This document shows, in pieces, positions 1-62,968 of a DNA stretch of 64,000 nt. The stretch is from Lepidodermella squamata (taxonomy: Eukaryota > Animalia > Gastrotricha): assembly GCA_047495785.1 (NCBI GenBank), contig JBLDXI010000007.1, positions 248,001 through 312,000 on the forward strand. The letters run 5' to 3'. How positions within the stretch are numbered: position 1 is the stretch's first letter; the number at the start of each line of letters is the position of its first letter. Both the position numbers and the translations under genes were made by a program. The notes under the pieces were generated by a model. That model had not been told where the DNA came from, did no database searches, and was given only the letters and a program-made list of their open reading frames with translations.

Positions 1-72
1 GAATGCCAAAAGACAAAATTGGCGCAAAGAATGCACCTTTAGTCTTCACCCTCAACAGGAACAATAGGTCTT

Positions 73-19677: not shown

Positions 19678-21501
19678 ATGATAGACTGTTTTGTAGCATT
19701 ACTTGTTGCTGTAACACTGCCGTTCACTCGATCAGGTAAAAAATAAATTAGTCTGCCTTAAAATTTTATTACTTGCGAATATAGTTGAAGTAGGATGCCC
19801 AAATGTTGACCTTCAAGTTCCGCCTGCGTTCAACTTCAGCGAGTCGAATTTATACGACTTCAGCGATGGGACATTTCAAATTTTCAGCCAAATACGAATG
19901 CCATGCGACGGCTGGATAACCGAATGGCGGTTTTTAACCAGAATAGCTATCATCGAAGGCTTGAATGTTGCCATTTTCCGGCAACGCATGTTCGAGCCGG
20001 TTTTCGACCTAGTCGGCGATAGCTTGATAGACAAAATGGCGACGCCTCGTGGGTTGACCAACATTTGGGTCCAGTACCGCCTTAAAACGCCGATAGCTGT
20101 TAAAGCTAACGACGTGCTCGGGCTATTCTACTCGGACGTCATGGCTCCGGCCTCGAGCCTATCAGTGGCTATTAAGGAGGATCAGGGACCTATATCTGTC
20201 GATCAGTTGCCCACTTACGTAATGTTTATCGATGCGACTCAAGTCAGAAAAACAAGTAATAAAATTCTAGAAATGAAATTAAATCGCTTAAATTGGATTT
20301 TTTTAGGATCTGTCGAGGTCACGAATGCGATTCAAACAATGAGGACACCGGCGTTACTCGGCATTTTGTCCGGCTACAATCCGTTCGATCACGAGGACAC
20401 GCATTCGTTCAAAGTTGCTGCTGAAGCACATAAAGTAGGAATTTCAACGGCATTTGTAACTGAAACGCCCCCACCGCCGCCGCCGCCGAAAATCATTTAT
20501 CAAACAACGCCGGCTGATGTCGGCGAAACTCAGCCTCCAATTGTATCAGCAAGTGAGTTAATTCTAGTTCTACAAATATTTTCAAATATTTGCGAACAAT
20601 TACCGTAAAACGTGAATTTCAGGTATAAAATAGGGTAAAATTGGCTATAATAAATATGCCACTTACAATTTCACTTGAATTAACAAAATTGCCGATTCGC
20701 AATCTTTAATGAATTTGACCCACATTTTGTGTGTGATTATTTAAATTTATTATGCCTTTGCATATGCAAATGAGCGTTCAAAATTACTCGATAAAATTGT
20801 CAATACTAAGATATTTCAAATTACCAAAAATCAGGTAAAAATCTCACAATTTAAGGGAAAATGAGGAATCTCGTATCCCACCTTCGACACAATTTCAGAA
20901 TCTGATTGGGATGATTTAAAGTTACCCCTGTTTGTTTTACTTTGAAATTTTATTTATAATTTATTTATAATTTTTTTTAAACTAAATTTGCTGAATAGGA
21001 TGTTATTACGCGCCCCGACATCGCGAGAATTTTTGCTGGCGGCCGAGATGGCGGTATTACTTCGAAGTCGAAACATCGACCTGTCGCCAATTCTACGGCT
21101 GTCGGTCGCTCGAGCCCGAAGCCAACAACTTCGACACGCGACTTGACTGCCGCTATCACTGCCGAGAAATGCCGCAGCCTGAGCACTACTTCCACAATAA
21201 CCACCTTCACCACAACCACCCGATGCCGCACGGCTACGAAGAACACCACGCGGTGCCGATTGTTCTGCCCTCGCCGTCGAATGACGACTACGTAGCGGCC
21301 CCGATTCAGTTGCCGGTTTCGAGTCGGTACATGCGACGGCGCCAAAATTACGGCCCGGAAGTTCCGCAACCGGCGTATCACAACCGATATCGATACCAGT
21401 CGAAACCAGCCAGTGGTGAACGAGTCAGATACGGATCATCATTACCTCAAAAACAACCGACCTCTTTACGACAATCTTATCGATGGTATTGGAGTGGATA
21501 G
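19678..21501 (+). CDS. Secreted PCDG-domain family member A: SP + conserved domain + Pro/Thr linker + variant Kunitz + His-rich tail
   Basis: SP MIDCFVALLVAVTLPFTRS; GCPNVDLQVP...QIFSQIRMPCDGWITEWRF; last exon from 20999 encodes CYYAPRHRENFCWRPRWRYYFEVETSTCRQFYGC...NNFDTRLDCRYHC then HYFHNNHLHHNH. Confidence 0.85.
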
Positions 21502-22600
21502 TCAACATCAAACTTGAATCAATTTTTTCGAATTTAAACCCGTTCAAGCTTGCCATGTTTTCGAAATGAACTATATTTCCCTCACCCTACAAATTTTGTA
21601 CCTGAAGTTTTACGGTTGTTTATAATTGCGACACACGTGCCATATTTTGAATAATAACCGTAATCATTGTTGTGGCTAAAATATCATGCTGCCACTCGTT
21701 GGTTTCTCAATTTATACCTTCTTAATAGCCGTAATTTACGGCGATGATAGTGCGCCATTCGATGAAAGATGAATAAAGACGCAGAGGTTATTCACATGTT
21801 TTTTTCATTATACTGTTTTTGTCCTGCCCTAGATATTTCTGCTTGACCAGGTACCATTTATTACTGTCCGCTCAAAGTTTTAAATTAATTTTGAGCGAAA
21901 AATAATTATTGATTATAAAACGTAATTTTCTACCTGTTGGGTTTATGTCACGCAAAATGTGGAGTGGCACTCCTGGTTCTATTTCTAGGAAAAAGGCCCG
22001 GCGGAATTATTGTTCTGAGGCCTAACAATAAGAACCGTGCTGCAAATCTGAGCATCAACACAATATGTATGAAACAATAAAACAGGTTGTTGTTATATCA
22101 CATGTATTAAATTGTTAGCGGAAAGTGAGCTCAAGTAGGCGAAATCTAAAAAAGAAACACGTGAGCAGCTCGGCTCGGCATCGGCACAACGGGCAGCGTG
22201 CGGCAGAAAACACTCGCGGTGAGGCACGTAATCGGGCGCCGATGAAAGACGCCGTCCGCCGCACGCATTCCTGTAATATACTACTATGTGCGCCTCTTTT
22301 TGCGCGCGCGCGTGTTTATTTATAGCAAGCGCGCCTGTCACATTTTTAACTTGAAACAATGTTATATTGACGAAAAATACACCGCCTTTTTGATACCTAA
22401 TGATGCAGCACAATAGCGCAACTCACCCGCTATTGTCATCATAAAATGTCTCTCTCGAAAGTATCTTGAGCAAAAAAGTTTCGTTAATAATTTTTCAAAG
22501 GATGATGTTTAAACATTTACAGTCCTTCTAAAAATATTATTCTTGAGATACGATAAGAGCGCTATATGTGACAAAAGCGCGATGATTATCGGTCGAGTTT

Positions 22601-24909
22601 ATGCGCGGTGTCGACAAAAACTTCCACTGTTTACTCTCGGCGTTAATTCGCTTCAACTTTTTTGCGCTCATCTCGTTGAAACGCGCTGAAGCTTATCGGC
22701 AACTCAACACCAAATTTTTACTTGTTTTACAATTTTTATAGACGTTGCCTCTTATGCAAGAGAGATTCCAGCATGTTAGGCAAATTTGACTCAGCAAGGA
22801 CAGTACGATTGGTACAGTTCACCCTATTGGCTTTGATGAGATTTTTCTCAACAGGAGGTTCGATTAATTGACCATATTTCAATAAATTTAAAAAGTATTT
22901 TGATTGGCCTGTATTTTTTCAAGAAATTTAATTTAATTTATTTATCAGCATCCCCATATTTTGTTGGATTTTTTATACCAAACATAAAGCCATAGTGTGT
23001 CCCATAAAAACGGAAAATGGACTAATTTCCACCTGAATGGCTGATAATCAGCCAAAATTTATAAAAAAAATTCGGAAAAATCTCTTTATATACAAAATGA
23101 TTAGCAAACTAGTGTCCATCGGGTTTTTCCGGGTTATTTCCGAAAAAATGCAAACTTTTGAAAGTTTAAAAATTGATATAATTCGCAAAAATTTTACATT
23201 TTTTTGTTTCTTTTCAAGGTGCAAAGGAATGTCCCTACTCTAGTACCTACAAAATTCCATCTGGATTGACAAGTGAGGTGGCGAAAAAATTCCCGTTCGT
23301 CGAAGCTGGCTTACAGGTAGCGTTGAATTATTTTCGAAAATATTAATAAATCTCCCCGATTTTTCTAGATTTTCAGTGATATAGTGATACCTTGCGACGG
23401 CTATTTAAATCAATGGCGGTTTATACCAAGCAGCGAGTACATAGTTGGCCTGCACCTAGCGGTATTCCGCCGCCGGGTCGACTACCCAACAATGTTCGAA
23501 GTTGTAGGGGAAACCTACATCGACCGACTGCTAGTACCGAAAAGCCACGTCGGTACATGGGTGAAATATACGACCTACTCGCCGATTCGCGTAAAAGACG
23601 GTGATTTGATCGGGTTTTTCTACGACCACATTGTCACGCCGACTACAATGCTGACGATTCGAAACAAAAATTGCGCATTCACCGATAACTTCCGCAACAC
23701 TTTCGTTTTTCTACTCGATCAAAATGCTTTCATGGAGTCTAATATCAAAAGTAATTTTTATTGATTTATTCCGAATTTTTTGGATATTTTTTCGATTTTT
23801 TTTAGGGGTGACTGTCGATCTTAGGAACGCTTACAAGGAGTGTAGAAAGCCGGCTCTTGTCGCTGTAGTTGTAAGCCAGGATTTGACAACAACTCCTAGT
23901 CCAATAACGACCCCAATCGCCACGACTATGGCAATCTACGACTACGGCGATGGCGGTTCTGGCGAAGATTTGAACCCTCGAGCTTCGTCGCCCGAACTTC
24001 CAGACACGACAACAACTTCAACGACAACTACAACGACTAGGCCGACTACAACGACGACAATGTCGACTACGGCGACAACAGAGCCATCATTTCCAGTGCC
24101 GAATTTCATCAGTTTTGAGTCCGGGAACAAATTACTAAAATCTTTTGGACATCATAAAAACCACAACGTTACGTTCAACAGATCGTCGATTTACCTGCCG
24201 AAACCTATCAACCAAATGGGCGTCATGTCCAGCCGTGCGTTTTACTATATAAAAAAATTCACCCGGGAAATGAAAAAAATACAACAAAATGCTTGGGAAA
24301 ATTATATTACTGGTGCATGATTTATTTGCTTTTTTGAATATTTTTTATAACCGCTTTTTATCAGCTGCGCATGTGGTTGAGGGATCACCCTAAACCCTTG
24401 CTAATTTTTTGCATTTTTCAGGATGTTTCAGCGTCCCGTCAATGCTACAGCGTTGCGTGCGAGAAACTGTTAGGGCGTATTTTGATTACTACTCCGGCGC
24501 GTGTACCCTATTCTACGGCTGCCCGGCGTCTGCGGCGGATGCCAACAACTTCGAACGCCTCGAAGACTGCGTTTTTTCGTGCGAGCAACACACGAGACGG
24601 TACCAGGAGATGTTCATCAAAGGCGAACTTATCCCGCCGCCAATGACGACGCAAGAGCCGTTTATGCCGAAGCCTTTATCCACCATACCACCCTATGTAC
24701 CAGCCGGGCCTTTCCAGCGACTCGTTCTTAATAACTTTAAATCGGCGAATAACCAGCCCAACTACTATCGACCTCGGATCGAAAACGATAACGAATTTGA
24801 TTCGCCTGTTTTGGACTCTTTAGGGTTGAGCTCGACATTCCGCCGGCCACCGTTTTGGACTTACTTCATGGGGCAACAAGGACGATTTAGACGGCGGCAT
24901 TTGACCTAG
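22601..24909 (+). CDS. Secreted PCDG-domain family member B (+ Thr-rich linker + variant Kunitz); first exon tentative
   Basis: Exons at 23219 (ECPYSSTYKIP..FVEAGLQ), 23370 (IPCDGYLNQWRF), ~23807 (Thr-rich) and 24422 (CFSVPSMLQRC..YFDY..CTLFYGC..NNF..C..C). Putative SP MRGVDKNFHCLLSALIRFNFFALISL at 22601; its splice junction was not resolved. Confidence 0.8.
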
Positions 24910-26532: not shown

Positions 26533-28470
26533 ATGGACACTTTAGTGATTTTATGGCTTCTGGCTATCTGGAGATTAGTATCTGGTGATAATCGAAGTAA
26601 GAATTCCCTTACTGCGAAAATCCTATATCTCATCATTTTGTCTTCCAGGACCTTCAGAAACCTTACTACCAGTTAATCCTCAATGTAAAAGGCAAACCTT
26701 GGTACCTCCGGATTTTTCGATGGACCCAAACCAGGTGTACAACTTTGCCGAGTCAACGCTTCAAATTTTCACTGAGCTTCGAATCCCCTGCGATGGTAAA
26801 TTTATTCCATCCTAATCAACTCGGAATGATGCATGCTTCTATTATAGGATTATTGAAAGAGTGGAAATTTCTAGCGAAAAATCCTATAGTCGCTGGGCTC
26901 CATCTCGCTGTTTTCAGGCCGCGAGTGAAATGGTCACCGGTGATGGTGAAGCCTAGCATTTCAGAAGAGCACAAAGTGTTCGACGTTGTCGGCGAGTCCT
27001 ATTTAAGAGCCCTCGCATCACCCGACAATCTACACAACACCTGGATTTACTACCCATTAGCCGAGCCGATACCTGTCGCGAAAGGCGATGTCCTCGGCTT
27101 CTACTACGACAGCTTCACAATGGTGGCTGATACTCTTACGATAAGTTCGAAATCGCGATATGACGTGCCGGACGAGAAACGCGTTAGACCGACCTATATC
27201 CTAATGCTAGATGACAGAACTCTAGCTAAAAACAGTTAGTTGGTCCTTTGATTTGAAAACTTTATATTTTTGTGTATGCTTAGGAACGGTTGATGCTAGA
27301 ATGGCTTTTGTCGATATTCGGGAACCTGCATTGGCTGTCTCGATAGTTCCAGCAAACGCGACTGTTCGATCGGACTTTGTCGGTAACTTCCCGACAACCG
27401 AACAGGAAATCACTTTTCCCGAACGAACGCGCCGGCCACGCCCTTCTAACCGCTTGCCTTCGAACCGATCGGGGAAACGGTCGAGGAACACCAATTTGTA
27501 CCGGACTTATGACGATCAAGTTGTTGTGAATAAGGTGGCGCAGGAGAGGCCGAATCCTTACGTCCATCACTATCATAACCCGAAAAAGGTTCGAGTCACT
27601 GGGCGGAAACACATGACTACGAAGAGCAGGCTATCGCGAAAGCGGCTGGGTAGCTCGACGCAAAAGGTCACCTATAAAGCGCCGATTGTCCGGAGAACCA
27701 CGACTCAGCCTCCGTTGTATTTACCCGAGGAAGAGTTGAGGAAAGCTTATCTAGCTTCGCTAGGTGATGGCCCACTTTTTTGGCATTTGATAAAAACCAT
27801 TCGGACTTCAACTACGCCGGTGCCTGTTACTACGGCCTATATCAAGTCGACAATAGATGGCGAATATTACGATGACCTAGATACTGTCGCAACGAGGACA
27901 AGAATTCCTACTACATCCACTGTTGCCACGACTACTACATCTACAACTAGATATGACGTCGCGACAAAAATGTCGAAAATTCGAACTGAAAGTGTTGTTG
28001 CTGACTTTAAAAGCGGCGAACTATACGTTCCAGCGCCGGTTGTAAATGCAATGATGAACGTTGTGGAACCGAGGATTATCGCCCGAGGTCAAGCGAAGGT
28101 CGAAGATATTGGGACAATGCCGGAGAAAATAATTTTCCCACCGAGTCTATCGAGTGCTCCTCGAATGAACGAAAGTAATTACTTGATTATTATTATTTTA
28201 TCAAATTAACCTTATTTTTTATTTAAGTATGCTACAGCCCTCCAATCGCAATGTTTCAATGCTCAGCGAAGAGACTTCGAGTCTATTTCGATTACGAGTC
28301 CGGAATTTGCAGGTTTGATAAAATTCAAATTTTTGTTTACCAGAAAATTTATTTTTTGTCAATTTAGAATGTTTTTCGGTTGCGAAGCTTGGAATCCTGG
28401 AAATGCGAACAATTTTGCGACAATCGCCGAGTGCCGGCGGAAATGTCGCAGGCCAGACGGAAGATTTTGA
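26533..28470 (+). CDS. Secreted PCDG-domain family member C (+ long basic/Thr linker + variant Kunitz)
   Basis: SP MDTLVILWLLAIWRLVSG; IPCDG|LLKEWKF; Kunitz CYSPPIAMFQC..YFDYESGICR|MFFGC..NNF..CRRKC split by an intron. Confidence 0.85.
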
Positions 28471-29234
28471 AACTTTGGCTAAAATTGTGTTCCATATCCT
28501 CCTACTGATTTTTACCTCATCATCATCGTTTTTACTTGGTTATAATCAATTTTTACGGGCTTCGAAGCCAATTTTCAAGTAATAAAAAATTTGAGTTGCA
28601 ATGATGAACTTGGTGTATTTTGGACTACGTTAATTAATTGCAGCACTTATAGTTTATAGCCGGCGTTGAAAATAGGTTACGAAAAGTCATGTCAACACGC
28701 AGCGGCAAGGCGTTATTTAGCCGAAAAATAGTGTAGGTATTGTCATCAGAGATGAAAATAATGATTAAACAAAGCGGAATTCGGCGCTATTTTCACTAAA
28801 TAAATGCAACGCATTTTGTTTCCGGTTGCAAGGTGTTCACGTATATATACATTTATGAAAAAGAACTATGCCGCGTTTTCAGTGCGCGTTAAAAAGCGTA
28901 AAAACATAGCCCGAAATAGTCATCGCCGTTATCAACAATCGCAAGCTTCTTTCATTGTTGCGCGCTCGGCAGCAATTTCTGCGCTTACAGAAAGCAGCAG
29001 TTGTTATACTGGTGTTTAATTAATATTAAACCGCTCATCAGCTGCATTCTTCGCGGCACCGCTAAAAACTACGGCTTAGCCTTATGTAAATAATTAACGA
29101 GGTTTTTTAAGAGAGTTTTACCCGTAATTAATTATTTCTGTCATCACCAGTCATTTTTGTGCGCACATTTTACGTCTCGCAAAAAGTCACATATATTTCA
29201 CTAATTTTGTAGACATATAATTCCACGTTCACAC

Positions 29235-31330
29235 ATGTGGAAAATCCTCAAGTCGCTGCTGCTGATTTGGAGCTCGCTTCTTCAGTCATCGCTAACTCAA
29301 GGTATTCGAATAATAGCTTCCCTTTACTTTGATTAATTTTACACGATATCTTAGAAAATTCGAGTTCGACCGTTTACGATGTCCCAGAACCACTCGACTA
29401 CAACTGCAAATCATCAGCCATGGTTCCGCATTACTTTACAGAGATTCAGGATGATATATTCAAATTTACTGAGCCAACACTGCAGATTTTCTCGAATTTG
29501 AATGTACCCTGTGACGGCCTGTTGACTCAGTGGAGGTTTCTCGCGAAGAACCCTGTCGTCTACGGCCTGCATTTAGCTGTTTTCCGCCCGCGTGAGGCTA
29601 ACAACAGAGTTTTCGACGTTGTTGGCGAGTCTTACCTTCGTGCATTTTCAACACCGGGTCTTGGGGCCCATGACACCTGGGTGTATTACCCTCTCGAAGA
29701 CCCTATCTACGTCGTGAAAGGAGACTTGTTAGGTGAGTCACTTCTCGCTTAAAATAACTCAACATTCACTGGGGAAATTTCAGGATTTTACTACGACAGC
29801 TACGCAACGCTGGCTGAAATGTTAACTATCAGTTCGAAGACTCATTTTGATATCAAAACTAAACGAATTCGACCGACTTATGTGATGATGATCGACGCGA
29901 AAACCATCTCGGCAAACAGTAAGTTTTTGAAATTTTTCATTAAGGTGGCATTTTTTCAATTTCAATCACAAACCTATTTTTCGAGGCTTTGGATTTCGGA
30001 TAACTTCGGTCATCTATTCATTCCAAAGCTCAGGGCAGGGTCATCAATTAGTTAAATTGCCTTGGGGTCCGATGAAAACTTTGACACTTCAGATCCTTAC
30101 CTTTGAGGGCCCGCAGGGTCCCATTCAGGAATTTGCCCAAGGGTCCGAATTAATTAGAAACCTATATCTCAAGTTTTTTCGTGGGAATTTTTTCTTAATC
30201 TCTCTTATTTCATTTGTTTCTAGCCACTATTGACACTCGTATGGCCTTTGTCGACATTCGAGAGCCAGCTTTTGGCGCTGTTATCAGCGTGCTGAAACCC
30301 GGCCAAGCTCGGAAACTGACGCATCCTACAACAACTCCCTCCGCTACCACAACAGAACTCAGCCAGAATTCAACCTTCGAAATAATTTTGAATTCAACCA
30401 CTTCGGTGGAATTCTTTAACATTGGCCAGTTGCTGAATGAGACCTCGACATCTATGGCGTCACCTACTGAGCAGGAGCAGTCGAAGATAGCAGCCTATTC
30501 GACTGCTGCGACTGAATTAGTAACAAAAATTAATCCAATGGTTGGTATGGAATTATCGGACATGTTCCCTGGTCGCGGTCAAAAGGGCCGACCGCAACAG
30601 GAGCGAGCTGAGCATTCAGAAGAGGACGACTCGGCTGAAGATGAAGGGTTACTTGCAAATCAGCCGAAATTGATGACTACAACGCACAGGTTGACAACGA
30701 AAAAAGCGGGTTCGACGCGTCTTATCAGCAAGAAACGCCGCCAGACTATTACAATGTCCGCAAGCGCATCGATTATTACGTCATCGGCTCCAATGAAATC
30801 TTCGGCCAAGACGCAGCGTAACAGGACTAAGAGGCGGAGGCGAACGACTACGGCCGTTCCATCCACAACTACTAGGGCATCAACTACGACGCAGCGAGTA
30901 ACAGAAGCGACTACAACGGCGTCTACTACAACGACGAAGAAACAGGAGGAAACACTGCCCTATGGTCTAGTCACCGTGCCAGGGGTGCCAGTGCATATGC
31001 CGGTCACGTTGAGTTTAGGCTACATGCCGCCAAAGGTCGACGATGAGCGGGATGACCCGAAAAATCGAGCCGTCATCGCATTTGTCTGCCTCAACCCGCC
31101 TACGGCTATGCCGACTTGCAACCGGAAAAAGCGACGTGTTTATTTTGACTACCAACAGGGGATTTGCAAGTGAGTGTCTCGACCTGAAAGCTTTTGTATC
31201 GAATTTTAAATTATTTTTTTCATTTGCATCAAGGCAATTTTTCGGCTGTGAATCATGGGACAGCGCGAACGCGAACAATTTCGGCTCGTTCGGCGAATGC
31301 CAGGCGAAATGCTTACGACGGGAATCTTGA
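29235..31330 (+). CDS. Secreted PCDG-domain family member D (+ Ser/Thr mucin linker + variant Kunitz)
   Basis: SP MWKILKSLLLIWSSLLQSSLT; VPCDGLLTQWRF; the Kunitz domain is split by an intron at the same position as in member C. Confidence 0.85.
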
Positions 31331-35851: not shown

Positions 35852-36988
35852 ATGTATGCAGTAGTAGAAAGGATACTAGCGTTTGCAGTCCTTTGTACGC
35901 TATTCTGGAGGTCAGAATGTGGCAAGCGCGTGTGTCCGCTGTTCCAGGAATTGCAGACACCCTGGGAGGACATACCCGACCCGCAAGAATATCGCTTCCT
36001 CGAGTCATCCCTCACGATTTTTACCAACTTACGCGTCCCCTGCACTGGCCAGCTGGTTGCCTGGAAATTTTGGGCCCAAAACGCGATTGTCTACGGCGTT
36101 TATCTCGGCGTTTTCCGCGAGAGAAAAGGCAGGAATGGCATTTTTGACCAGGTTGGTACGACACACATATTTGAAGAAGCCTCTCGAAACGACACAATGA
36201 ACGCGTACTGGCGCCGTTTCGAAGCCAATCCTGCCATCGATGTGAAGCAGGGCGATTTAATAGGCGTTTATTACGAGAAATTCAGAATTCGAAGCGAGCT
36301 ATTGACCATCAGCACGAAATCGGCGATGCAAATGTCGGCGGAAGAAAAGTACGACAACCCATCTTACATCTTACTCATGGACTCTTACGACATTGAAGCG
36401 CGAAATGGAGTTGTAGACACAAAATCAGCAATTAGAGGTTTTTCGCTAATTTTCACGGAAAAAATCTTAAGGTGGTGTTTTTATTTTTTAGATTTCCGAA
36501 AACCTGCATTATTGGCTTATTTTTCCACGATCAGTGAGTTATTCGTGGGAAATTGTATATTTTAATTTTTTTTCAATTGACAGATCAAAATAAAATTGAG
36601 TCAGCCCAGCTTGCAATCGGAGTATGATTTCCGAAATTTATGTCAAAAATTTGTCGTAATTTTTGTAATTTTTCAGGACTTGAACGAGTATACAAGCACG
36701 CGAAATCCTAAGCTTTTACTGCCGAATCCTTGCTTCAACCAGCCAAGCGTATCGACAAGCTGCTGGCTTCAGGAGGAACGAGCCTATTTCGACCTTTACC
36801 AAAGCATCTGCGAGACGTTTACTGGTTGCCCGGCCGCGTTCTCCGAGACGGAGGCGCCGAACAATTTCGACTCGCTGAACGACTGCATCCTGGCGTGCCG
36901 GCCGGAGAAACAAATCAAGCAAATCAGCGCCGAGCCAGTGCCGCGGCGACTGTTGCCACTGCGGAGCAAATTAGCTAGCCGCTCTTAA
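35852..36988 (+). CDS. Secreted PCDG-domain family member E (short linker + variant Kunitz)
   Basis: SP MYAVVERILAFAVLCTLFWRSECG; VPCTGQLVAWKF...IDVKQGDLIGVYY; Kunitz CFNQPSVSTSC..YFDLYQSICETFTGC..NNF..CILAC. Confidence 0.85.
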
Positions 36989-37903: not shown

Positions 37904-39027
37904 ATGAGAAAAATACCATGGACAAATACATTCGAGCTCGGCAATCAGCTGATAGCTGTACTAATCATGTCGTCGATAGGTATAAGTTTTTCCTATATTA
38001 AAAAGCGCTTCAGAATATTTTTTATGAATTAGCCGGGCTGAATGCTGACAAATGCTACGTTGACGAGACGAAGGTGCCGATCGATTTCAAAATGGAGCAA
38101 GCTGATAGTTATCGATTTTTAGAAAGCGCACTTCAGATTTATACAGATCTTGAAATTCCATGTGACGGTGAGCTATTTCGTGGAGGGAAATATTTTTCTC
38201 AAATTCTTTCAATTAGGATATTTAACTGAATGGCGCTTTCTCGCGGGAAACCCATTTATTTACGCTCTTCATTTGGGCATCTTCAGGCCTAAACAAGCTA
38301 GTCCATGGCCGGTGTTTGAACTGGTGGCTGAGAGTCATCTTTCAGCCATGTCAACGCCCGAAGGCCTCTCAGGGATATGGGTCTACTACCCGCCGAGCGA
38401 ACCGATCGCCGTGAAACAGGGCGATTTAATCGGCGTCTTCTACGATAAATTTGCGATATCTATGGAAATGCTGACAATTATGAACAAGAACGAAGTAACT
38501 ATGGGAGAAATGGCCAGGACGAAGACTTATATCATGCTCTTGGATAATCTCACTCTTCGGAAAAACAGTAAGAGCCTCCTTAATTTGTTGTTATATTTTT
38601 CAAAAATTGATTAAATATAGAAACTATTGACACGGCAAATGCTGCTGTTTCGTTTCGAAAACCAGCATTATCAGCAATTGTTTCACCCTGGATTAAGAAG
38701 CCGAATTCTGACGAGAATTATTCAGCCGAAGCTGACAGCGTCGAAGTGATCAGTGGCTACAACAGTCCGTATTACAGCAGCAATAAGGGTGAATTAAGGC
38801 GTAAAAAGAAGCTGAGCCCGCCCATCCAATCGACCTTCACTCGTCGCGTGAAGACAACGACTACAACCACGTTTACACCCCCTACCTGGAGGTCGTCTCG
38901 GCATCGAACTCCCGAGCCGGAAACTACGACAGAGGCGGGCCCTATCGCGACTTGGAGCACAACGCTACCGGCAGAGGAGATTATTTGCAACGGAATTTTG
39001 TGCTGGCCATCGCTGGACTACGATTAG
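37904..39027 (+). CDS. Secreted PCDG-domain family member F (Thr-rich tail, no Kunitz)
   Basis: KCYVDETKVP..LQIYTDLEIPCDG|YLTEWRF..PIAVKQGDLIGVFYD; ends IICNGILCWPSLDYD*; AATAAA at ~39154. Confidence 0.8.
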
Positions 39028-39297: not shown

Positions 39298-40995
39298 ATG
39301 GATAGGCGAGCTTCAACTTTCAATGATGTAAACGAAATTCGTGCCAGAAATTCAAATTATTTCTTTGTTATCTCCAGCAGGGTACGCATCCGAGTAACCG
39401 TCCGATTCCTATTGAACTCTTGAATAAGCACACGAATCAGCGAGGGCCTACTTTGTCAGCTGGTAAACTCGCAAAGGTCCTTCGAGAACCAGTCGAGCGT
39501 GAATTCGGCGACTACAAGTTCTTCATTCCAAGTTTCGACTACGCAACAAAGCACACGGTCAATTTCACAGGGTTCAACCTATTCGTACCCTCTGTCTCCT
39601 ATGGCAACGTGGCTCAGCTGGCTATGGAGCTGATTTTGGCGACAAATGGGACAAATGCAGATATAGACGACACTACGACGGAGGACGATGATTCAAGTTT
39701 CTTTGACGCGGACGCAATGTTGGGCAGAAACACCTCAGCCCCAGCCGGTTTAGGGCAAAGGGCGCCGTCTGTTTCCCCCGAACCGGTCGCCTTGACCCGG
39801 ATAGGCGCCGTATCGGCTCAAAATAGCAAGCAACAACTGGAGATGGGTCATTATATTTGCGAACACGCTGGGTGGCTCATGCCTGTTAGCGACTGCCTAG
39901 TTCCAGTTGTAGGCAGCAATCCTTTCGGCAGTAAATCGCCGAGTTTGGCCACAGCAGCTGATGTCTACGTCAATTTACCGCATAAAAATGTCTTCATACA
40001 ATTCCGATCCAACATTGTTCAAGTTTGTTTCTTTTATCGACCATAATCGTGGAAAAAGCTATTTTAATTGCTAAAAATCAGGTAAAATTCTAAAAAATTG
40101 CCAAAATTATCAGAACAATTTTTTTAATTCTCGAAACACGTCTTTGAACTTTTTCTGAAATGTTATTGAATTATTAAAGAACTGTGAAAGGCTATTCGCT
40201 GAGGAAATGGCCGAATGGATAAAAGCTGCGAAATTTGTAAATGTTATCATCATGACGTCATCATTTTCATTTGCGCGAATCGATGAGCAAATTCAGTCGA
40301 AGGAGCAACAGATTCGGTGGATTGCAACACCGGCGGCTCTTGACCCCGAAAAACGAACTAATCTCGGCGAGAAATTGGCGCGAACTTTCGGGCTGTCGCT
40401 TGAGATGGAGGGCGTTAGAGATGTACCCCGCTCTGAACGAAAAGCTGGCCTTGTCCGAATTCCAGGCGGTGGATTTGCTGGGCCTTTATTTCGGGCAATG
40501 TAATTTTACATTTAAAATAAATATTTCTCAATCATCGAGTTTTTATTTAGCTGGAGGCGCCTTCCCGATCTGTCATGTTTCGCTATCGTTCGATTTTCAT
40601 CCGAGGGTGACAATGTACCTGATGCTTTCGACTTGGCTAACCACATAGCCGCTTTTGCGAACATCGTAGACATCACAGACGCTCCTATTAAGCCACTAAC
40701 TTTCGCAACGAAGAAGAAGAATATTCAGGTAAATATCTTAAATGATTTCATTTTTTGAAAATTGATAGAGGGTGATTGTATTATAAAAATAATGATAATT
40801 TAAGGCTAGATCAGAGCCCTTTTATAGACCGATAAAGAGCGTAGTAAATGGAATTGAGGTATTACGGAGATCAAGAAATAGTGAAAAATCGGTTTAATTC
40901 TAAAACAGGAAAATACCTTGTTTCGAGCTGACGAGCTGAAATGGAAGCTACCGCTAACTTGGCGCTACCTTTACGGATCGATTCGCCGCGGTTGA
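39298..40995 (+). CDS. PSMG2: Proteasome assembly chaperone 2 (PAC2)-like protein, copy a
   Basis: PAC2 motifs FTGFNLFVPSVSYGNVAQLAMELIL, VPVVGSNPF, IQFRS, RIPGGGF, FSSEGDNVPDAFDLA and C-terminal WKLPLTWRYLYG; start exon tentative. Confidence 0.85.
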
Positions 40996-50980: not shown

Positions 50981-52538
50981 ATGAATCAGCTATTAATCTT
51001 CACCTTGATATGTTTTGTAAAAGGTTAGCCGGGTACAAATTGTCTCCTTAATTTGTAAATAATTTGTAATATTAAGGTGCGCCGTATGATCAACAATGCT
51101 CTAGCGATATCGAATACAGAGTTCCGCCTGAAATCAATCTCGAACTGCCAACGTCGTTCCAGTTCGTCGATTCTGGTCTCACTATATGCCCATCTTATTC
51201 AATCCCATGTGACGGTTAATTTTTGTTATAAAATGAATTTTTCCCGAAATTACAGCGATGATTTTTAGGCTATTTAACCCAATGGCAATTTGTTGCCGTG
51301 AATCCTTACGTTATCGGCCTCAACCTTGGAGTATTCAGACGGCTGTCCGATACGTCGAGTGTATTTTTCCTCGTTGGGTCAACATACCTTAACGCATTAC
51401 ATACCCCGTCGAAAATGCGTCAAACCTGGATTTACCACCCAGTTAATCCTCCAATCGCTGTCAATCAGTCAGACATGCTTGGTGATTTTTCACGAGATTT
51501 TTTAGACAAAATTACAGCGAATTTTATTAGGATTTTTCTACGACGATTTCCAAACCCGAAACGAATTGCTAACCATCGGAAGCATGAGGCTGATTGATGA
51601 GAAGGACATCATAAAATCAGACATGCAACCGTGCCTCGTATCGCTTATCGATGGCAGCAGTTTTGTCAACAAAGGTTCGAGATCTCCAAAAAGCAAGTCA
51701 CGTTTCAATTAATTGACACGCTTTCATTTTGTTTTTATTTTTTTTGTTAAATCGATTTTTGCCTCAGCTAATTCAGGTATCTTTGCATTATACTTGTCAC
51801 CACTGCTACATAGTAGAATAGATTAAATAAATTTAAACTCACCTTCTAGATAGCTAACCTAACTGAAAATTACTTTGCTGATTTATTGCGAATTTTTTTA
51901 TAGAAATCGTGGATATGAATTCAGCAGCGGTAGATTATCGAATGCCTGGCCTGACAGCAATTATAAAAACCAGCTTAATAGAGGCAAATTACCTGGAGCA
52001 ACCTGCAGCAGCAAATTACGAAAATAACGAAGTAGTCGAAGTTACCGTGCCATCAACGCCCGCGTTTTCTCGAAAGTTTCGCACTAGGACAACTACGCCG
52101 ACGACTACGACAACATTAGCCCCTAATTACGCGTCGTCAGGTGATGAGGACGAAAATATACCCTACGAAGTTGGGGGTTCATTAGCCAATGACATGCCTG
52201 CCCCTCCTGAGCCAGTTATGGAAATCTCACCAGCTTCATCATCGTCTGTTCTTGAGATATCCTACTCCAATCCTCAACCAGTCAAAGAAGAAACTCTGAA
52301 GCTATTACCAATAGGTGAGGAAAAATGCGACTCCTTAATTTTTTTTAAGGTTGCTCTTTTATTAGTTTGCCTCAAAACACCAACCGCTCTGCAAATCTGC
52401 GCCGAGGCGTCGACTCGGGCCTTTTTCGACTATCGACAAGGCATTTGTCAAGCCTTTTACGGATGCCCTCCAATAGCCGAGGGCGTCGAAAATAATTTCC
52501 AGTCTCTAGATCACTGCCAGAGAGCGTGTTATAGATAG
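50981..52538 (+). CDS. Secreted PCDG-domain family member G (+ linker + variant Kunitz)
   Basis: SP MNQLLIFTLICFVKRLAG; SIPCDG|YLTQWQF; PPIAVNQSDMLG; Kunitz CLKTPTALQIC..FFDYRQGICQAFYGC..NNFQSLDHCQRAC. Confidence 0.85.
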
Positions 52539-54291: not shown

Positions 54292-57200
54292 ATGCTGCCT
54301 GCCTTACTGGGCATAGGCATAGCAGGAACTTTCTTGGCTGATCTCGCATCAGGTATTCAATCATTTTCAGGCCGATATGAGTCCAGAAATAATTTGATAT
54401 TTTTTATAGCCCAAGTATGTCCTTTATCGAACACCTTGGTGCCTCCGGAATACCAGTTGGAGCCGGCTAGAAAATTCCCTTTTGCCGAAGCTGGTCTTCA
54501 GATCTTCACTCAACTCCGCGTCCCTTGTGATGGTACGATTTTTCTTTGATTTTATCTTAATTTTAGCTGATAGCTGATTATTTACGGAATTTAAATTTAA
54601 ATTTATTTTACCATATAGGATATCTAACACAATGGCGATTTTTGGCGCGAAACAGCATTGTCGTAGGCCTTCACTTGGGCGTGTTCCGCCCACGCGCCGG
54701 CGTGCGTAACGTTGTAGATTTGGTCGCCGAGTCTTACATCGACTCGCTGGCCACGCCGGACAACAAACGCGGCACCTGGGTTTACTACCCGGTTGAACCG
54801 CCAATCGTCGTGAGGCGCGGCGACTATCTCGGCTTTTTCTACGACAAACTCGACACTGTTGCTGATTTGTTGACGATAGTCAGTAAAAGCGAGTATGACA
54901 TTAAAGACCCAATCCCACCTACTGCTGTCTTTTTGAAAGACGCATCTGATCTTATACTAAATCGTGAGTTTTGAGTAATTTTTATGGCCTGATTATATAA
55001 TTCCCAATATTTCAGAGACAATTGATGCTAGAAATGCTCAACGCGGTAAATTTAAAAATTATTGCTGAATTATAGTTTATTTCAATTTTTTCATGAATTT
55101 AGAATATAGATACCCAGCTTTAACGGCAATAGTCAAATCGCTGACTAGTGATGTTCAGGATTTAATGCCAGTAACCCGGGCTGTTCCTGTCGTTGACCCA
55201 AACTGGGGCTTTGAAGAGACAACAACAGAGGCGCCGACTACAACCACGTTAAGGCCCCGTCCTCGGCCAAGAACGCGACCTCCTACAGACCCACCCACGA
55301 CTACAACAACAACGACTACGACGACGACAACGCCTATTCCACCGCCACCACCGACTACGACTCGCCGGATTATTGTCCCAACGCGGGATAATTCAATAAC
55401 CCCATCCGTTCCTATTGGTCCTTACATGCCGGCAACTTTGCCTGGCAGTCAGCCAAATCTTCGAGTCCCTGGACGTAAGCTAATTACATTTTTCTTTAAT
55501 TAATTACCATAAGTCAAGTTCACCGGTCACTATGAGATTTTGACTAAGGAATTTTTTATCTGGATTGAGGAAAGGGTGTGCCAACTGCACCTACTAAAAA
55601 TAAGGGTCCAGCACTAAATTTAAGGTTCCAGCACTAAATTTGAAAGTCACTCGCACTAATCCTATTCAACACTAAATAAGCAACTCTAACACTAAATATA
55701 CAAAGCCACCACCTAATTCGTGGATCATCATGCCGCACTAGCGAGGCCGCTGGAGAGCAGTTACTACAAGGATATGCCAATCGACCTGGGCCCTATTCCC
55801 TGTCCCCTATCCCCAATCAATCAACCATAAACACTTGCGTTTTCACACTTAGACACTGCAGATTTGGTGGTAATGTCCACCGCTAATCGCAAGCAGGGTC
55901 AGGCATCACTTGTAGGTCAAATGACAACAGTTTGCTAGGCCATAAAAAATGTGCGTATATGCAAATAAGGCAGGATGTTGAAATTTAAGTTACGTTGGGA
56001 GGGCCTGTTTCAGGAGGGACTCATTTTTAGTCATGGGCAAATAGCACTATTTATTGCTACTACAGCCACTCACATCCTGCTAAAACGAGATGGCAAACCA
56101 TTTCAGTCCTATCTCTATCGTATGCATTTCAAAAGGTGAAAGCTGACTGTGATCACTATTGCGCAACACCTAACCTTCAAACAAAGACTGCGATGATAGA
56201 GATTGCCACGTCTCAGTTAGCTATAATAACTCTTGAAGCTGATCAAACTTTCAAAGTTTCGGATAAAAGCCCATACTGCCACCGAAATACAGTCAATACT
56301 GCCACTCAGGGTCCCACCATGATGGTCCCGTGTAAAAAGCCAATGGTTGCGTTCCGTAGCAGAGTTGTAGGCAGTGAGCAACTTTCAATTCCCAATCGAA
56401 AGAGTGTGTCATAAAGTGATGCTAATCTCAACATCATGGCTCATTTGCATAATATGCATTATTTTTAAGTCCGTATTTCTCTGCTTAAAATTATGCAAGC
56501 GAGCCTAAAATCGCGGGTGCATCATATCCTAATCCTAACTCCTTAACATTTCTGGGAACCGTAAACCCATGCCTACCTTCAGCTCTATAAAAGTGGCTTG
56601 AGCTGCCAATAATACGGAATACGGTGAAAACCTAGTCATGCATCGTCTGAGGGCGCGTGGTTGAGAATGCCTTAGAGCCTCGCCTGGGCTTAACAGCAGT
56701 AATAGGCGCTGAATGCTGATATTTAGTGCTGGAACTCATATTTAGGTGCCCAAATGATTTAGTGCGAGCTGTTTGCAAATTAGGTAAACGCACTCTCGAA
56801 TTTAGTGCTGGAACCTCATTTTAGGTGGTGCACTTATTTAGACCCTTGAGGAAATTGAAATTTTTGATAAAGACTCCCTTTAAATTTTCATTTTTGCACA
56901 GATTTTTGTACAGATTTCCCAAATTATTTCCCTCTTTATTGCATTTGGATAATTCTAAGTTATGGGTAACATCTGAATTAGCTCCCATTTTCGTGAAATG
57001 CAAAATCTTTTTTTTTAACTTGAAAATCGAAGCCGAAAAAAGTTTGAATCTGCGTAAAAAAAATCAAATATTGCGTCTTTTCTAAGTCAAAACAAAGGCC
57101 TACAAAGAAATATTTCCTTTGCTCCTGTTACTACACATTTTATTCATTTATTCTTATCCTAACCGATAATTTGGACAAAAAGATCCTAGTTATAGACAAT

Positions 57201-58594
57201 TTCGAATACTTGTTCCTAGCATTTCGGATTCTCCATTTTCTCTCAATTGAAAACTTCAGGAAATTAGGAATAAACAGAAAGAATGGGCTGCATTGAAGTT
57301 TTTTTGAAAAAAGTGTATCCTTTCCTTAAGTAAACTGAAGTTTATTTTTTATTTTATTTTTATTTTAGAGTGTTTAAATCCACCAACGGCTCTTCAAACC
57401 TGCGTACGGCTCAGCTTGCGTGGTTTCTTCGACTACGACCGCGGCATGTGCCGGCCATTTTACGGCTGCGAATCCTTCGCGCCTGATGCCAACAACTTCG
57501 GAACTGTCGACGAGTGCCGCCGCGTTTGCGAGGGTGCCGGTGGTACCATGTTCGTCACGCCCCGAAACTCCAACCAGGTCGGCACGGAACCGTTCGTCGC
57601 CGGCGGCGCGCCTGTCCTGAATAGCGGCAGTCGCGTTAACAGCCTACCCCAAAACGCCCCGGTAGGCCCTTACCCGGAACAGCGGCAACAGCAAGAACAG
57701 CTACCGGGTTCGGCTGAATGCTTCCAGCCACCTAGCGCCTCAACTTTCTGCAGCGAAACAACCACCCGTTATTACCATGACCCATCGAAACGGACCTGCT
57801 ATTCCTTCTACGGTTGCGGGTTGGTCGGCCAGTCTGGCAACAACTTCGCCTCGATGTTCGAGTGCACGATGAGGTGTAATGCTACGGCGGCGCCGATTCC
57901 TCAGGTCTTCACCCAGCAAGCCCCGGAGACTACCCCGCAGCCTCGCCCACCACCCCCGCCACCACCTGCTCCAGTTCCGATTATTCCGTTGATCCCAATC
58001 ACGCCCCCTACAACCCCTAGAATGGTCATAATACAAATCGACAACGCCGCTTCAACACCAGCCCCGTTCCAACCGTTGCCAACCCCGATAGCACCAGTGA
58101 TACCTAGTTATCAGTATCAGCAACCACAGCCAGTTGAGCCGACTTACATTTTACCAGCCCCTGCCCCGCCTAGTTACCAAATCCCTGTCCAGCAAATGCA
58201 GCCAGTTCAGTACTACCAACCGGCGCCGGCCCCGCCTCCGGTCCGCAGCCAACCAGCCGCGGCCCCGTTTTCGGGCGGAATTTTCGACGCGTTGCCGAAT
58301 TTATCGCAACGCCTGCAAGGCACCTTCCCGGGCAGTGCACCGGTCCCGGCTCAGCCTGTTTATTACCAGGCGGCGCCTAACGGCCAGTTCGTGCCCGTAC
58401 AGCCGCGGTCGTCGATGAACCAGCCGAGAAGTTACTACTCGCAGGCAATCAACGCGCCTCAAGGCGAGCCGAGCGAATCTTACGCGGCGCAAGATGACGC
58501 GAAAGATGGTAGTCAACCGTATTACTCGGGCGGTTTACCATCAAATTTCTTCCCATCGATATTCAATAGACGGCGAGAGTCCTTTGGCGGCTAG
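54292..58594 (+). CDS. Secreted PCDG-domain family member H (+ Thr/Pro linker + two variant Kunitz + Pro/Gln/Tyr-rich tail)
   Basis: SP MLPALLGIGIAGTFLADLAS; VCPLSNTLVP..VPCDG|YLTQWRF; Kunitz 1 from 57369 (ECLNPPTALQTC..), Kunitz 2 (CFQPPSASTFC..); ~1.9-kb intron containing a MULE-like element. Confidence 0.88.
55574..56845. mobile_element. Mutator/MULE-like non-autonomous element with perfect 9-bp TSD
   Basis: TTGAGGAAA at 55565-55573 and 56846-56854; GGGT...ACCC termini; subterminal (g)cactaaat repeats on the left inverted as atttagtgc on the right. Confidence 0.85.
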
Positions 58595-59222
58595 TTAAAT
58601 AATTTTTATTATATTGTTCATCAATAATGTTTTTGCTCCAAAAAAATGGATATATATGTTTACAATTGTTATACATGCCCTCGAACGCTGTAAATTATGA
58701 GGCTTTATCGTGTTATAGTCCGGTGAAAGGTTACAAAACCGAAGACAGACGACCAAACCTCATTTTATATATACTCATCTCGCGCACATTTGTCAACCCT
58801 CATGATGCTATATTATTATTATTATATTTTTTGAACAATTTTATTTCTATATTATTCACTTGATTATTGTCAAAAATCTCCGAAAAGCCTTCTTATACAT
58901 CTGCCAACTCTGATTGTGCGTGCTTTGTCAACCCTAAATTTCAAAAAATTTCAAAATTTTTTTGTTACCTTAATTTTTTAATCACTGCTGCAAAGAATAA
59001 AATCAGTATTAATGCGTTGGAAAATGAGCTCGAATTTTATTATCTCAAAATCTAGATGAAACGCGGCAAGCTAAGAGCTGTTCCACAACTCTTTTGTTTG
59101 AGAGGACAGACAATTTCACCTTTTGTTGTGCCTTGAACTAAAATGCTATTATTTTACGGTGGTCATCAGCTTCATTCTACAGCAGTTGTTATGAACGAAA
59201 ATCTTATCTGTTTCAATAAAAG

Positions 59223-60037
59223 ATGCCCGCCATCTTTTTCCTGACAACTGCTGGCTTCATTATTGTAATCACCCTGCTCGGTGGAACTGCTCACGCGCGA
59301 TCTGCCGACTACTTCTGCCCGACTGGTGAGAACGTATTCGTGCCTGAGGTTAAAATTCTAGGCGATGCCTCGACTTACAGCATCGCCGAGGTAGGGCTGA
59401 CGCTGTACACCAACTTGACGTTCAACTGCGACGGTGTAGTCACCCAGTGGCGATTTGTCACCCGAAATGCGTGGATTTACAGCTTGCATCTAGCCGTTTT
59501 CAGGTGGTCATCCGCCAGTCGAAACCAGCTTCTTACAGGCCATACTGAGGTTCAACTTGTCGGGGATACCTTGATTGACTATCACAGAGCGAGTCGGACG
59601 GCGACACCCATTTGGACTTACCACCGGGCTCAGCCACCTATTCAAGTCCAACCTGGAGACTTCATAGGCAATTTTCAAGTTTAAAATGATTTTTTTTCAA
59701 TTTTCCAAATTTTTTAGGCGTTTTCTACGAATATTTGAACATTCCGAAAGCTCATCTATCAAGCGTGTCTAAACCAGTTGCAAGGGATGATAAAGGCTAC
59801 GACATACTGACGACAGCTCCAACTCTAGTTATGCCCCTTGTTGACGGCCAGCAAATTCGCAAAGCTAACGGTGAGATAAAAAGACATAATTATTTCTTTT
59901 TCATCTCTCTTTTTTGATTGTATTGAACAACAGGTTCAATTAAAATAAGCCACGCCATTCAGTATAACCGCTTGCCGGCCATAATTGCGGTCATGCGGCC
60001 CGGAATAACGCGCTCGAAAATGTCCCTCTCGACTTGA
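59223..60037 (+). CDS. Secreted PCDG-domain family member I (domain only; no linker or Kunitz)
   Basis: SP MPAIFFLTTAGFIIVITLLGGTAHA; FCPTGENVFVP..FNCDGVVTQWRF..PPIQVQPGDFIG; requires a GC-AG intron at ~59668; ends YNRLPAIIAVMRPGITRSKMSLST*. Confidence 0.82.
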
Positions 60038-60930
60038 GAATGGGTGGGCGCGAAAACAAGTCGTTATAATTCAAACATAAAATCTCGCAAACAATAACAT
60101 TATATGAATAAGCGACTTTTTATAGCAAATAAAAAGGCATCAGAACAATGTTTACACCTTAATGTCTCTCGCTTTTCATTTTTTTCAGGAGTGTTCGCAA
60201 TTGCCACCTGCTTTCAATCGGCACTTTTTATTTAATTTTAAAACCTTTTGTTTATGCGTTCGCGAGCAAACGCTTTAGCTAGTAATTAAAAATCGCGATT
60301 AATTACAAAGCTCCTTTTTTATTCAAAATATTTACGAAACACATCAAGGTGAGACCGTGCGCTTCAAATGTTTGCGTTTGCTTGCCTCTTCATGACATGC
60401 GATACTATCCTATTTTCATTTTTCATATAACCAACCTTAAAAAATACCCTCAAACCTGCTCGGGGTCCATTAGAATGTCATTGCTGTTTATAGGATAACT
60501 AAAAGTATAAAACCCTCGCGATGTGATAGCACTCTGGTGTGTCGTTGATGTCGTTGAACAACTTTTTATGCCGTTATTATTTGCGGTCTTTTATAGCACC
60601 AACAGGGACTTGTCATATATAGCCCGAGCTTGTTTTATAACACCCGGCGTTTTGCAAACTTGTAACCAGTCACAAGCTAATTTATCGGCTCAGGCACGTA
60701 TTTTGCGTGTGCCAGAAACACGCGCGCATGTGTAACACGGTGTTTTATGACACTTGCGAGGTCTTGAATTACCCCTTAATTGAATGTTGACCAACGACAT
60801 ATCTAACAGCATCGCAAAATTTTTATGATCGGCAATTCTCAATTGCAATAGCCGCCGATTTTTTATTTACTTTTCAATGACTCGGACGATTGATTCGTCG
60901 ATGCAAATAAACAAGCCGACTCTCTGAAAA

Positions 60931-62968
60931 ATGTTCCGATATTTAAGTGTCATCCTCCTTTTAACGACAGTTCATGGTGAATTTTCAATTTTTCGATTTT
61001 TAATAATTTTGACAGCTAATGTAAACAGGTCGAAATTGCCCGAATCACGATTCGTTTGTTCCGAATTTCAAACGTCTCGAGCCTGGTGATAGATTTCCTA
61101 TCGCAGATTCGCGGCTTCACATCTTCCCCCAGCTCTCATTGCCTTGCGATGGTTTGCCCCCGAAATTTGATAGAAAAATCAGGGATTAAATCAATAATTT
61201 TATAGGGTATCTAACCGACTGGAAGTTTTACGCGCAAGGTCCTTCTATTTATGGCCTCCATCTCGCTGTTTTCCGGCTAATAGGCCGGGAGAAGTACGGC
61301 CTTGTAGCTGAGACTTACATCGATAATTTCCAAAGCAACTCGACTAATGGGACTTGGGTGTATTTCGCCACCCAGCCGCCGTTGATTGTCGCTCGAGGCG
61401 ACGTTCTCGGCTTCTTCTACGACGATCTTGACATGGAAGCTTCACAGCTAACTATTATGACTCGAAACACCCTGCGAAGCGGCACAGAGCCAAGAACTTA
61501 TGTTGTCGATATTGACGCAACTGATATTGACGAGACAAGTAAATTTTTAAATTTCAATGAGAAATTATCTGATATTTCCCATTTTCAAGATTCGATTGAC
61601 GTTTCGGGTTTGCTGCGAGATTATCAATATCCGGCGCTGGTAGCTGTTCTCAATGATTCGCCCCTAGTCCATAAATCATTGACAACAGTTGGAAAGTTGG
61701 AAACGCCAGAGCCCATTGATGACCAACTGCCCGCCAAGGTCGATAGATTCGTCAAAGCCTCACTGTCTCATGTTGACCATTCCCTAATGGTTCACCCACC
61801 TAGTGAGTAGCAAGTTATTTTTCGCTATTTTTTAACGAGTAATAATTACCTCGCAAGATCATTGCATATGCAAATGAGCGTCCATAATTACCCACTAATT
61901 CAGCAAACACTTTTTAAATTGCCTAAAATCAGGGGAAAATTGAAAAATTCTCAAAATTTTCACGAAAATCAGGAATAACCTTGACCACCTTTACTTGAAA
62001 TTTCTGAATTTTTTGAGAAAAATCTGATTTTTAATTGTAATTTGAAAGTTTACTTCTTTGTTGCGATTTATAGGATAGCAATTTTTTTCAACACTAATTA
62101 TTGCTTTTCGGAATTTGCAGAGTGCCTCAACCCGCCGATTCAAACAAAGTTCTGCTCCGGACTGAGCTTGCGGTCTTACTTCGACTATTCTCGCTTCGAA
62201 TGCCGAGCATTTTTCGGCTGCCAAAGCGATGACCCAGATGCGAATAACTTCGCCAGCATAGAACTATGCTACCGGTCCTGCGTAAACCAGGCCCGGCTGA
62301 CTTCAGCCAGCCGCGATGCCGTCTGTGAACGCGCGCCTGTCTACAACAACTTCTGCTACCACCCGTCAGCGCGGTTCTACTACGACCGAAGCTCGCAGCG
62401 TTGCTATAGCTACTTAGGCTGCCCTGTGCCTAAAACGAACAACTTCGGATCTGCGATGGAATGCACCTCGAAATGCAACGCCCCTTATTCGCCCGACTCA
62501 ATGCCTATAACTACTAGCTACAACTCTAGCGTCCAACTTGGCGCAACTCGAGGTAAAACCAGCCTGACCCCTGTTGTCAGCCAATCGATCGGCAACCATT
62601 ACCAACCGAATTACATCTCAACTGGAAATTACCAGCCTGTAATCAAAGCTCAAAATACTGAAAACTTGACGCCGAAAAAAACTCGACTCGCTCTCCCTGA
62701 GGAAAAGGTTACTGAATCCGGAAAGACCCGTGCGGAACTGATTGATTCGTTCTTCGGGCCGAGGAATAAAGATTCAGGGCTGATGACATCGCATAGCTCT
62801 GAAATTGAAAAGCCGCTACCGGAGCTATTGACAGACAGCATATTCTCACGTATACCCGGCTTTTCGTCTAAAAGTGACAACTCTAATAATAGGAAGTCGT
62901 CGCCGATGGACAAATTCGAGACAGAGTGGCTATTCGGCCGGCCGATTATCAGAACTTGGAGATTATGA
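60931..62968 (+). CDS. Secreted PCDG-domain family member J (+ two variant Kunitz)
   Basis: SP MFRYLSVILLLTTVHG; NCPNHDSFVP..LPCDG|YLTDWKF; Kunitz CLNPPIQTKFC.. and CERAPVYNNFC... Confidence 0.87.

Follow-up and report, generated by a model that had tools for sequence, protein, structure and literature searches.

A tandem array of ten genes encoding modular, putatively secreted proteins with an unnamed head domain in Lepidodermella squamata

The sequence analyzed here, referred to as the window, is a stretch of 64,000 nucleotides (nt) from the gastrotrich Lepidodermella squamata (GenBank assembly GCA_047495785.1, contig JBLDXI010000007.1, positions 248,001 to 312,000 of the forward strand); it is animal DNA of about 40% G+C with very short GT..AG introns. 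Between positions 19678 and 62968 of the window lies a tandem family of ten paralogous genes, A to J, each encoding a modular protein built on a common head domain. A tblastn search with the gene A domain as the query returned exactly ten copies, all on the + strand, with head matches at 19772, 23363, 26702, 29423, 35948, 38216, 51106, 54418, 59316, and 61037, and a six-frame scan of the window with a hidden Markov model (HMM) of the family returned the same ten; piece E-values range from 1e-10 to 2e-53. Neither search found extra fragments or minus-strand copies in the window. Ten + strand genes had been placed at these loci by an earlier note made from the sequence alone, and both searches bear this out. 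Spliced models, obtained by listing the GT..AG pairs that keep the frame from one conserved peptide anchor to the next, are open without internal stops in all ten genes (233 to 708 codons), as follows.

Gene A, 19678-21501, + strand: 425 amino acids (aa); exons 19678-19735, 19785-20255, 20307-20552, and 20999-21501; signal exon, head, short Pro-rich linker, Kunitz-like module (21001-21162), and His/Pro/Tyr-rich tail.
Gene B, 23219-24909, + strand: ~490 aa; exons 23219-23316, 23369-23750, 23806-24234, and 24422-24909; head, Thr-rich linker, and Kunitz-like module (24424-24582); 5' signal exon candidates considered at 22601 or 22773.
Gene C, 26533-28470, + strand: 558 aa, six exons; signal, head, 275-aa basic/Thr-rich linker, and intron-split Kunitz-like module (28230-28312 plus 28368-28446).
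Gene D, 29235-31330, + strand: 540 aa, five exons; intron-split Kunitz-like module (31087-31169 plus 31234-31318).
Gene E, 35852-36988, + strand: 316 aa, three exons; signal and head in one exon, in-frame 54-nt intron before the last strand, short linker, and Kunitz-like module (36725-36898).
Gene F, 37904-39027, + strand: 322 aa, four exons; head and Thr-rich tail, without Kunitz module.
Gene G, 50981-52538, + strand: 390 aa, five exons; head, linker, and Kunitz-like module (52368-52535).
Gene H, 54292-58594, + strand: 708 aa; exons 54292-54352, 54410-54532, 54619-54963, 55103-55474, and 57369-58594; head, Thr/Pro stalk (with a run of 12 Thr), Kunitz-like modules (57371-57529 and 57716-57877), and 238-aa Pro/Gln-rich tail.
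Gene I, 59223-60037, + strand: 233 aa; signal and head only.
Gene J, 60931-62968, + strand: 520 aa, five exons; head, short linker, Kunitz-like modules (62120-62284 and 62321-62476), and 163-aa tail.

These models reproduce nine of the ten start codons in the earlier note, together with the end coordinate 62968, but not the start at 22601 given for gene B, which was rejected: the open reading frame (ORF) at this position has no phase-compatible (phase-1) GT donor and cannot be spliced in frame. The alternative first exon at 22773 is a guess and stands as a candidate only. The C-terminal arrangement agrees with that note throughout, with no module in gene I, a Thr-rich tail in F, one Kunitz module in A to E and G, and two in H and J.

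The window genes carry 2 to 5 introns each, most of them 49 to 57 nt long. Three intron sites are common to the paralogs (after the signal exon, within the Gly codon of 'PCDG', and before the last strand), and a fourth, directly after the second Gly of 'GD..G.FY', is present in some copies only. Among the 37 modeled introns, the sole non-GT donor belongs to the conserved intron of gene I at 59668-59717, which is GC..AG. The intron of gene H at 55475-57368 spans 1,894 nt, as placed by a strong in-frame donor and acceptor rather than by RNA; against the ~50 nt usual in the family, this length may reflect an insertion inside the intron. The same intron contains ORFs of up to 127 codons with no similarity to the family.

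Contigs from one sequencing run (X2, 2015), whose RNA nature was guessed by the tool, were compared with genes A and B and lie on the exons of both at >=99% identity. Two contig joints, 20552>20999 in gene A and 24234>24422 in gene B, coincide with modeled GT..AG introns, and at the 51-nt intron of gene A (20256-20306) a loose contig end at 20256 continues with the letters downstream of the intron. Because the X2 contigs carry these matching joints, genes A and B are expressed and their transcripts are spliced as modeled, with three introns confirmed. The earlier note had named unexpressed or differently spliced models as evidence that would count against it; for A and B, the contigs show the predicted splicing.

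Two further features of these introns were observed. The 51-nt intron of gene A and the 54-nt intron of gene E (36438-36491) are both in frame and stop-free, and their retention would keep the reading frame and add 17 to 18 residues to the head. Within the 446-nt intron of gene A, many contigs of the DNA run X1 (depth of 48 to 79) match positions 20752-20842 over only 24 to 36 nt and then diverge, which suggests that this segment holds a short dispersed repeat.

The head extends over ~170 to 190 residues, from a Cys near the mature N terminus to the 'R.PAL' strand. Pairwise identities among the ten heads range from 25 to 56%. At 17 positions every copy has the same residue; both Cys, G, W, F, FR, W, D, G, Y, and the P of 'R.PAL' are among them, a pattern that fits the consensus given in the earlier note. 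Conservation extends beyond the array: in an alignment of 123 segments, G43 (model numbering) is retained in 114, W48 in 118, R66 in 119, D113 in 117, and G116 in 115. The core signature reads, in order, C.G....W.F, h.h.VWR, LVG, and I.V..GD.IG..Y, and all ten window copies match the superfamily profile over this core of ~90 aa, with its near-invariant G, W, R, D, and G. The W-x-F and h-x-h-x-V-W-R patterns, both invariant, lie in strands, and the GD turn connects two strands. High-entropy stretches are found in the N-terminal arm and in interstrand segments, and several of these segments have insertions in genes C and I.

The two Cys had been proposed to form one disulfide, and their distribution is as would be expected for a bonded pair: across the superfamily segments, both are present in 90, neither in 9, and only one of the two in 11. 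The bond would probably join Cys4 to Cys41, pinning the N-terminal arm to the first core strand.

Outside the head, the modules are of familiar kinds. Signal peptides are clear by eye in 8 of the 10 genes and atypical in F, and gene B has no assigned signal exon; the proteins are probably secreted, as the earlier note had it. The linkers comprise 11 to 275 residues, of which 29 to 52% are Ser, Thr, or Pro, with Thr runs of up to 12, and the resulting stalk is presumably O-glycosylated. All eight single-exon Kunitz-like modules match PF00014, and six of them exceed its gathering score of 21 bits (A, 24.3; G, 26.9; H, 25.9 and 32.1; J, 24.1 and 26.7); those of gene B (19.4) and gene E (18.4) fall just under the cutoff. 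A tblastn comparison also aligns the single-exon modules with the split ones of C and D. Every Kunitz-like module retains six Cys and the NNF motif, in which the C-terminal modules resemble the Kunitz/BPTI inhibitors, and the description of the proteins in the earlier note as modular with Kunitz ends is supported. The joining of Kunitz modules to unrelated extracellular domains is also seen in papilin, HAI-1/SPINT1, and AMBP, but in the window the partner is an unnamed jelly-roll with a mucin-like stalk.

The head itself had been described as unrecognized, and it has no Pfam model. Pfam assigned no family to it in the window exons and gave no meaningful match in any of the 123 family segments (only scattered chance-level rows), a profile search of all PDB sequences with the head was blank, and no name for the head appears in the NCBI records looked up. 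A word-indexed protein search returned a single relative, P0001, from a metagenome contig. An exhaustive profile search covering 1.84 billion representatives recovered 186 cluster representatives at an E-value of <=1e-3, 64 at <=1e-10, and 17 at <=1e-30. The best of these matches cover the whole head domain, and all of the close relatives looked up derive from metagenome assemblies in the ENA; two of the relatives (P0019 and P0023) have a signal, head, Pro/Thr linker, and Kunitz module, and two others (P0002 and P0003) have two heads. The weaker matches are to the ~90-residue core, which is repeated two to five times, ~160 residues apart, in large mosaic proteins whose other domains are Sushi, PAN, EB, and HRM or astacin, ApeC, CUB, kringle, and C-type lectin; the matched core stretches in these proteins are covered by no Pfam domain.

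Carriers of the core include uncharacterized proteins of Lineus longissimus, Patiria miniata, Babylonia areolata, Haliotis asinina, and Glandiceps talaboti, a 'polycystin-1-like' protein of Ptychodera flava, and a LamG-domain protein of Candidatus Entotheonella. Besides the one bacterium, these are a nemertean, molluscs, a sea star, and hemichordates, so that no fewer than four named invertebrate phyla are represented, and clusters from the Atlas searches described below also point to sponges and annelids. This distribution does not support the suggestion that the domain is a lineage-specific invention. The combination of head, mucin-like stalk, and Kunitz module looks restricted to relatives of the source organism, having been found only in the metagenome proteins P0019, P0023, and P0068. 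A literature search returned nothing relevant on DUF4082 or on rotifer proteins combining Kunitz and mucin, and the searches made turned up no report of this architecture. The domain is new to standard libraries; the jelly-roll, the mucin stalk, and the Kunitz module are familiar building blocks.

The tandem family is old. In a maximum-likelihood tree of the ten heads and 26 close relatives, five of the window genes (A, E, F, G, and I) have a metagenome protein as partner, a different one in each case (support of 98 to 100, with all but one of the pairs starred). C and D (56% identity) are the only two that are closest to one another, D being a young sister of C. The window copies require at least six to eight label changes on this tree and therefore do not stem from one recent burst. 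A metagenome scaffold from a relative, L002 (11.5 kb, 38% G+C), also carries three tandem copies, one of which has two Kunitz modules. Because the paralogs interleave with their relatives and L002 carries tandem copies, the array is old and has been conserved as an array. The family genes at 539-5017 of L002 are single long ORFs, one of them encoding a 461-aa two-Kunitz protein without an intron.

Structure prediction assigns the head to the beta-sandwich class that had been suggested from its alternating hydrophobic pattern. With the 123-row alignment as input, the first row being residues 24-208 of P0009 (the metagenome partner of gene E, 50% identical to it), AlphaFold2 (AF2) produced a jelly-roll beta-sandwich with an N-terminal arm (predicted local distance difference test [pLDDT] of 93.5; predicted template modeling score of 0.90). 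In the VIA exhaustive search, the top match to this model was residues 214-407 of the Bxb1 tail-tip chain 9d93_Pa (Z of 11.6; 170 residues aligned with a root mean square deviation of 3.7), followed by a cyanophage A4 capsid-associated chain (Z of 10.1), the Cwp84 lectin-like domain (8.4), and a phi812 baseplate protein (8.0). Matches with Z of 7.5 to 7.8 were obtained to residues 9-175 of the acetyl-xylan esterase PbeAcXE (7tog; 7.5) and the N-terminal residues 5-178 of a PVA esterase, and lower ones to PHR domains (5.8 to 6.6) and to F-type lectins and CBM32 (5 to 6.6). Among the predicted viral structures of BFVD there were 13 matches at an E-value of <=1e-3, all to tailed-phage proteins; most are minor tail proteins, and the set includes collagen-repeat and FN3-type proteins. 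An Atlas search by shape returned unnamed clusters from sponges (template modeling [TM] score of 0.72), actinobacteria (0.69), and phages (0.65); by features, the nearest named clusters were PHR, Lectin_like (0.87), DUF4082 (0.85), and Glft2_N, at 0.85 to 0.87, values that serve only as leads.

As modeled, the head has a galactose-binding-like or carbohydrate-binding module (CBM)-type jelly-roll fold that superposes on lectin and CBM modules. With the bacterial domains of this type (the Cwp84 lectin-like domain PF18560, the acetyl-xylan esterase region that includes a CBM, CBM32, and the F-type lectins; Z of 5 to 8.4) it shares the general beta-sandwich fold only, as none has an HMM match to the head. 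The likeness to the distal domains of tailed-phage tail fibers, which bind host surfaces, and of minor tail proteins (Bxb1, the Douge central fiber gp20, and those in BFVD) extends over nearly the whole head as a jelly-roll; the phage proteins differ in forming trimeric fibers and in lacking a signal peptide, disulfide arm, mucin stalk, and Kunitz module. Mycobacteriophage baseplate accessory proteins contain CBM-like domains that are proposed to engage host cell-wall glycans (preprint, PMC13252515).

A resemblance to the bacterial DUF4082 domain (PF13313) had been proposed in the earlier note, and it stands at the level of fold but not of membership: DUF4082 is a jelly-roll of bacteria and phages similar in size to the head, but none of the 123 family segments, nor any of the window exons, matches PF13313 at an E-value of <=1. 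The idea that DUF4082 is what the nearest solved structure shows could not be confirmed. Chain 9d93_Pa is probably the 617-aa gp29 'tail spike' of Bxb1, judging by protein length alone, and Pfam finds no named domain in gp29. An hhalign comparison of the family with the single gp29 sequence was not significant (probability of 1.6%); the alignment places the W..F, V.R, and GD motifs on residues 268-341 of gp29, within the structurally matched range.

The reading that we prefer, at a probability of roughly 55%, is that the array is a tandem family of long standing that encodes secreted modular glycoproteins, with a head that attaches to a glycan or polymer surface, a stalk that serves as a mucin-like spacer, and a Kunitz module that binds or inhibits a partner. 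The signal peptide would direct secretion of a protein beginning with the jelly-roll head of ~180 residues, which would attach to glycan or another polymer on matrix, mucus, or microbes. The Ser/Thr/Pro-rich stalk would then hold the Kunitz end, present in eight genes, at a distance as a mucin-like spacer, and that end would bind or inhibit a protease or another partner. Conserved residues would fix the scaffold, and loops that vary among the paralogs would confer a specificity on each.

Several observations weigh against this reading. The near-invariant residues G43, W48, R66, D113, and G116 look structural, as parts of the scaffold rather than ligand contacts, and the analysis pointed to no ligand, sugar-binding residue, or binding site for the head, nor was a conserved sugar-binding motif recognized. 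The good AF2 model is that of the 50%-identical metagenome partner of gene E rather than of a window protein; a first model, built from the gene A exon with its intron read through and from a shallow piece-wise alignment, was poor (pLDDT of 68.7) and gave uninformative fold searches. Foldseek found no match to the good model in the PDB at an E-value of <=1e-3, and VIA Z scores of 8 to 12 exceed background only moderately. The signal peptides were assigned by eye rather than with a predictor, and expression is seen for genes A and B only, in a single run that the tool guessed to be RNA. The Kunitz ends, too, depart from the classical inhibitors, in which the Cys spacing is 8-15-7-12-3 and a Lys or Arg at P1 directs inhibition to trypsin-type targets. 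In the window, the spacing is typically 9-15-5-15-3 (range, 9(10)-15-5-13..18-3), and the P1 position is occupied by W, V, S, N, W, A, V, S, S, and Y, never by Lys or Arg; because of the altered spacing and the absence of a basic P1, protease inhibition is uncertain.

A distinctly less probable reading, although the best of the alternatives, is that the head is no lectin but a module for protein-protein interaction or oligomerization, similar to TNF/C1q or PHR domains, and that the family uses protein contacts to assemble or cross-link an extracellular matrix such as a cuticle, egg envelope, or adhesive. The PHR matches (VIA Z of 5.8 to 6.6; Atlas features of 0.87) are consistent with such a role, as are the Pro/Gln/Tyr-rich tails of A, H, and J, which are matrix-protein-like, and the occurrence of the domain beside Sushi, PAN, and EB, which are typical of protein-binding mosaics. 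TNF-family and C1q heads appear among the weak Foldseek rows, but with TM scores of only 0.23 to 0.32, and phage fiber tips and lectin/CBM-type modules match the structure better.

It is unlikely that the proteins are chiefly secreted protease inhibitors, with a digestive, defensive, or anti-predator/anti-parasite function, in which the head does no more than target or stabilize the Kunitz module. Eight of the ten genes do retain Kunitz modules with all six Cys, and the varied P1 residues (W, Y, V, A, S, and N) could suit enzymes of the chymotrypsin or elastase type. The secondary binding loop of these modules is shortened, however, and the basic P1 is absent, and it is the head that forms the conserved, family-defining part: it is intact in genes F and I, which have no Kunitz module, and it occurs without one in other phyla. 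Partial decay of the array, with some copies being pseudogenes or mismodeled, is very improbable, since the lack of an assignable first exon in gene B, the GC..AG intron of gene I, the 1.9-kb intron of gene H where ~50 nt is typical, and RNA support limited to A and B stand against ten models open over 233 to 708 codons, 17 positions kept invariant at 25 to 56% identity, and five copies that each have a conserved partner of their own among the metagenome relatives.

From the array, a ~180-residue extracellular domain for which there is neither a Pfam model nor a solved structure can be defined cleanly and with high confidence. Defining this domain would annotate hundreds of proteins now listed as 'uncharacterized' and would link an animal extracellular module to the surface-binding jelly-rolls of phages and bacteria, and the architecture of head, mucin stalk, and Kunitz module is a candidate, amenable to testing, for a secreted protein family that targets surfaces or glycans. 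A broader proposal, which we regard as a long shot, is that the head founds an undescribed superfamily spanning phage tail-fiber tips, some bacteria, and many invertebrate phyla, and that its expansion in this lineage to dozens of paralogs, alike in scaffold but with variable loops, serves as a germline-encoded recognition repertoire, tethering mucin and Kunitz modules to microbial or matrix surfaces.

The array is interrupted at 31.4 to 35.8 kb and at 39 to 51 kb. An Rfam scan of positions 1 to 64000 at gathering scores found no RNA family. The second interruption contains protein-kinase exons (43.4 to 47.3 kb) and two paralogous + strand ORFs, at 39420-40046 and 41617-41991, which have no Pfam match and share the C-terminal block CEHAGWL..C.(V/L)PVVGSNPFG...AADVYVN..KNVFIQFRS. 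Upstream of the array are two minus-strand ankyrin-repeat genes, represented by the ORFs at 16380-17105 and 17359-18108, the latter of which has a signal-peptide-like hydrophobic N terminus (MAAVLFLCLLITTIGG...) that is unusual for ankyrin proteins.

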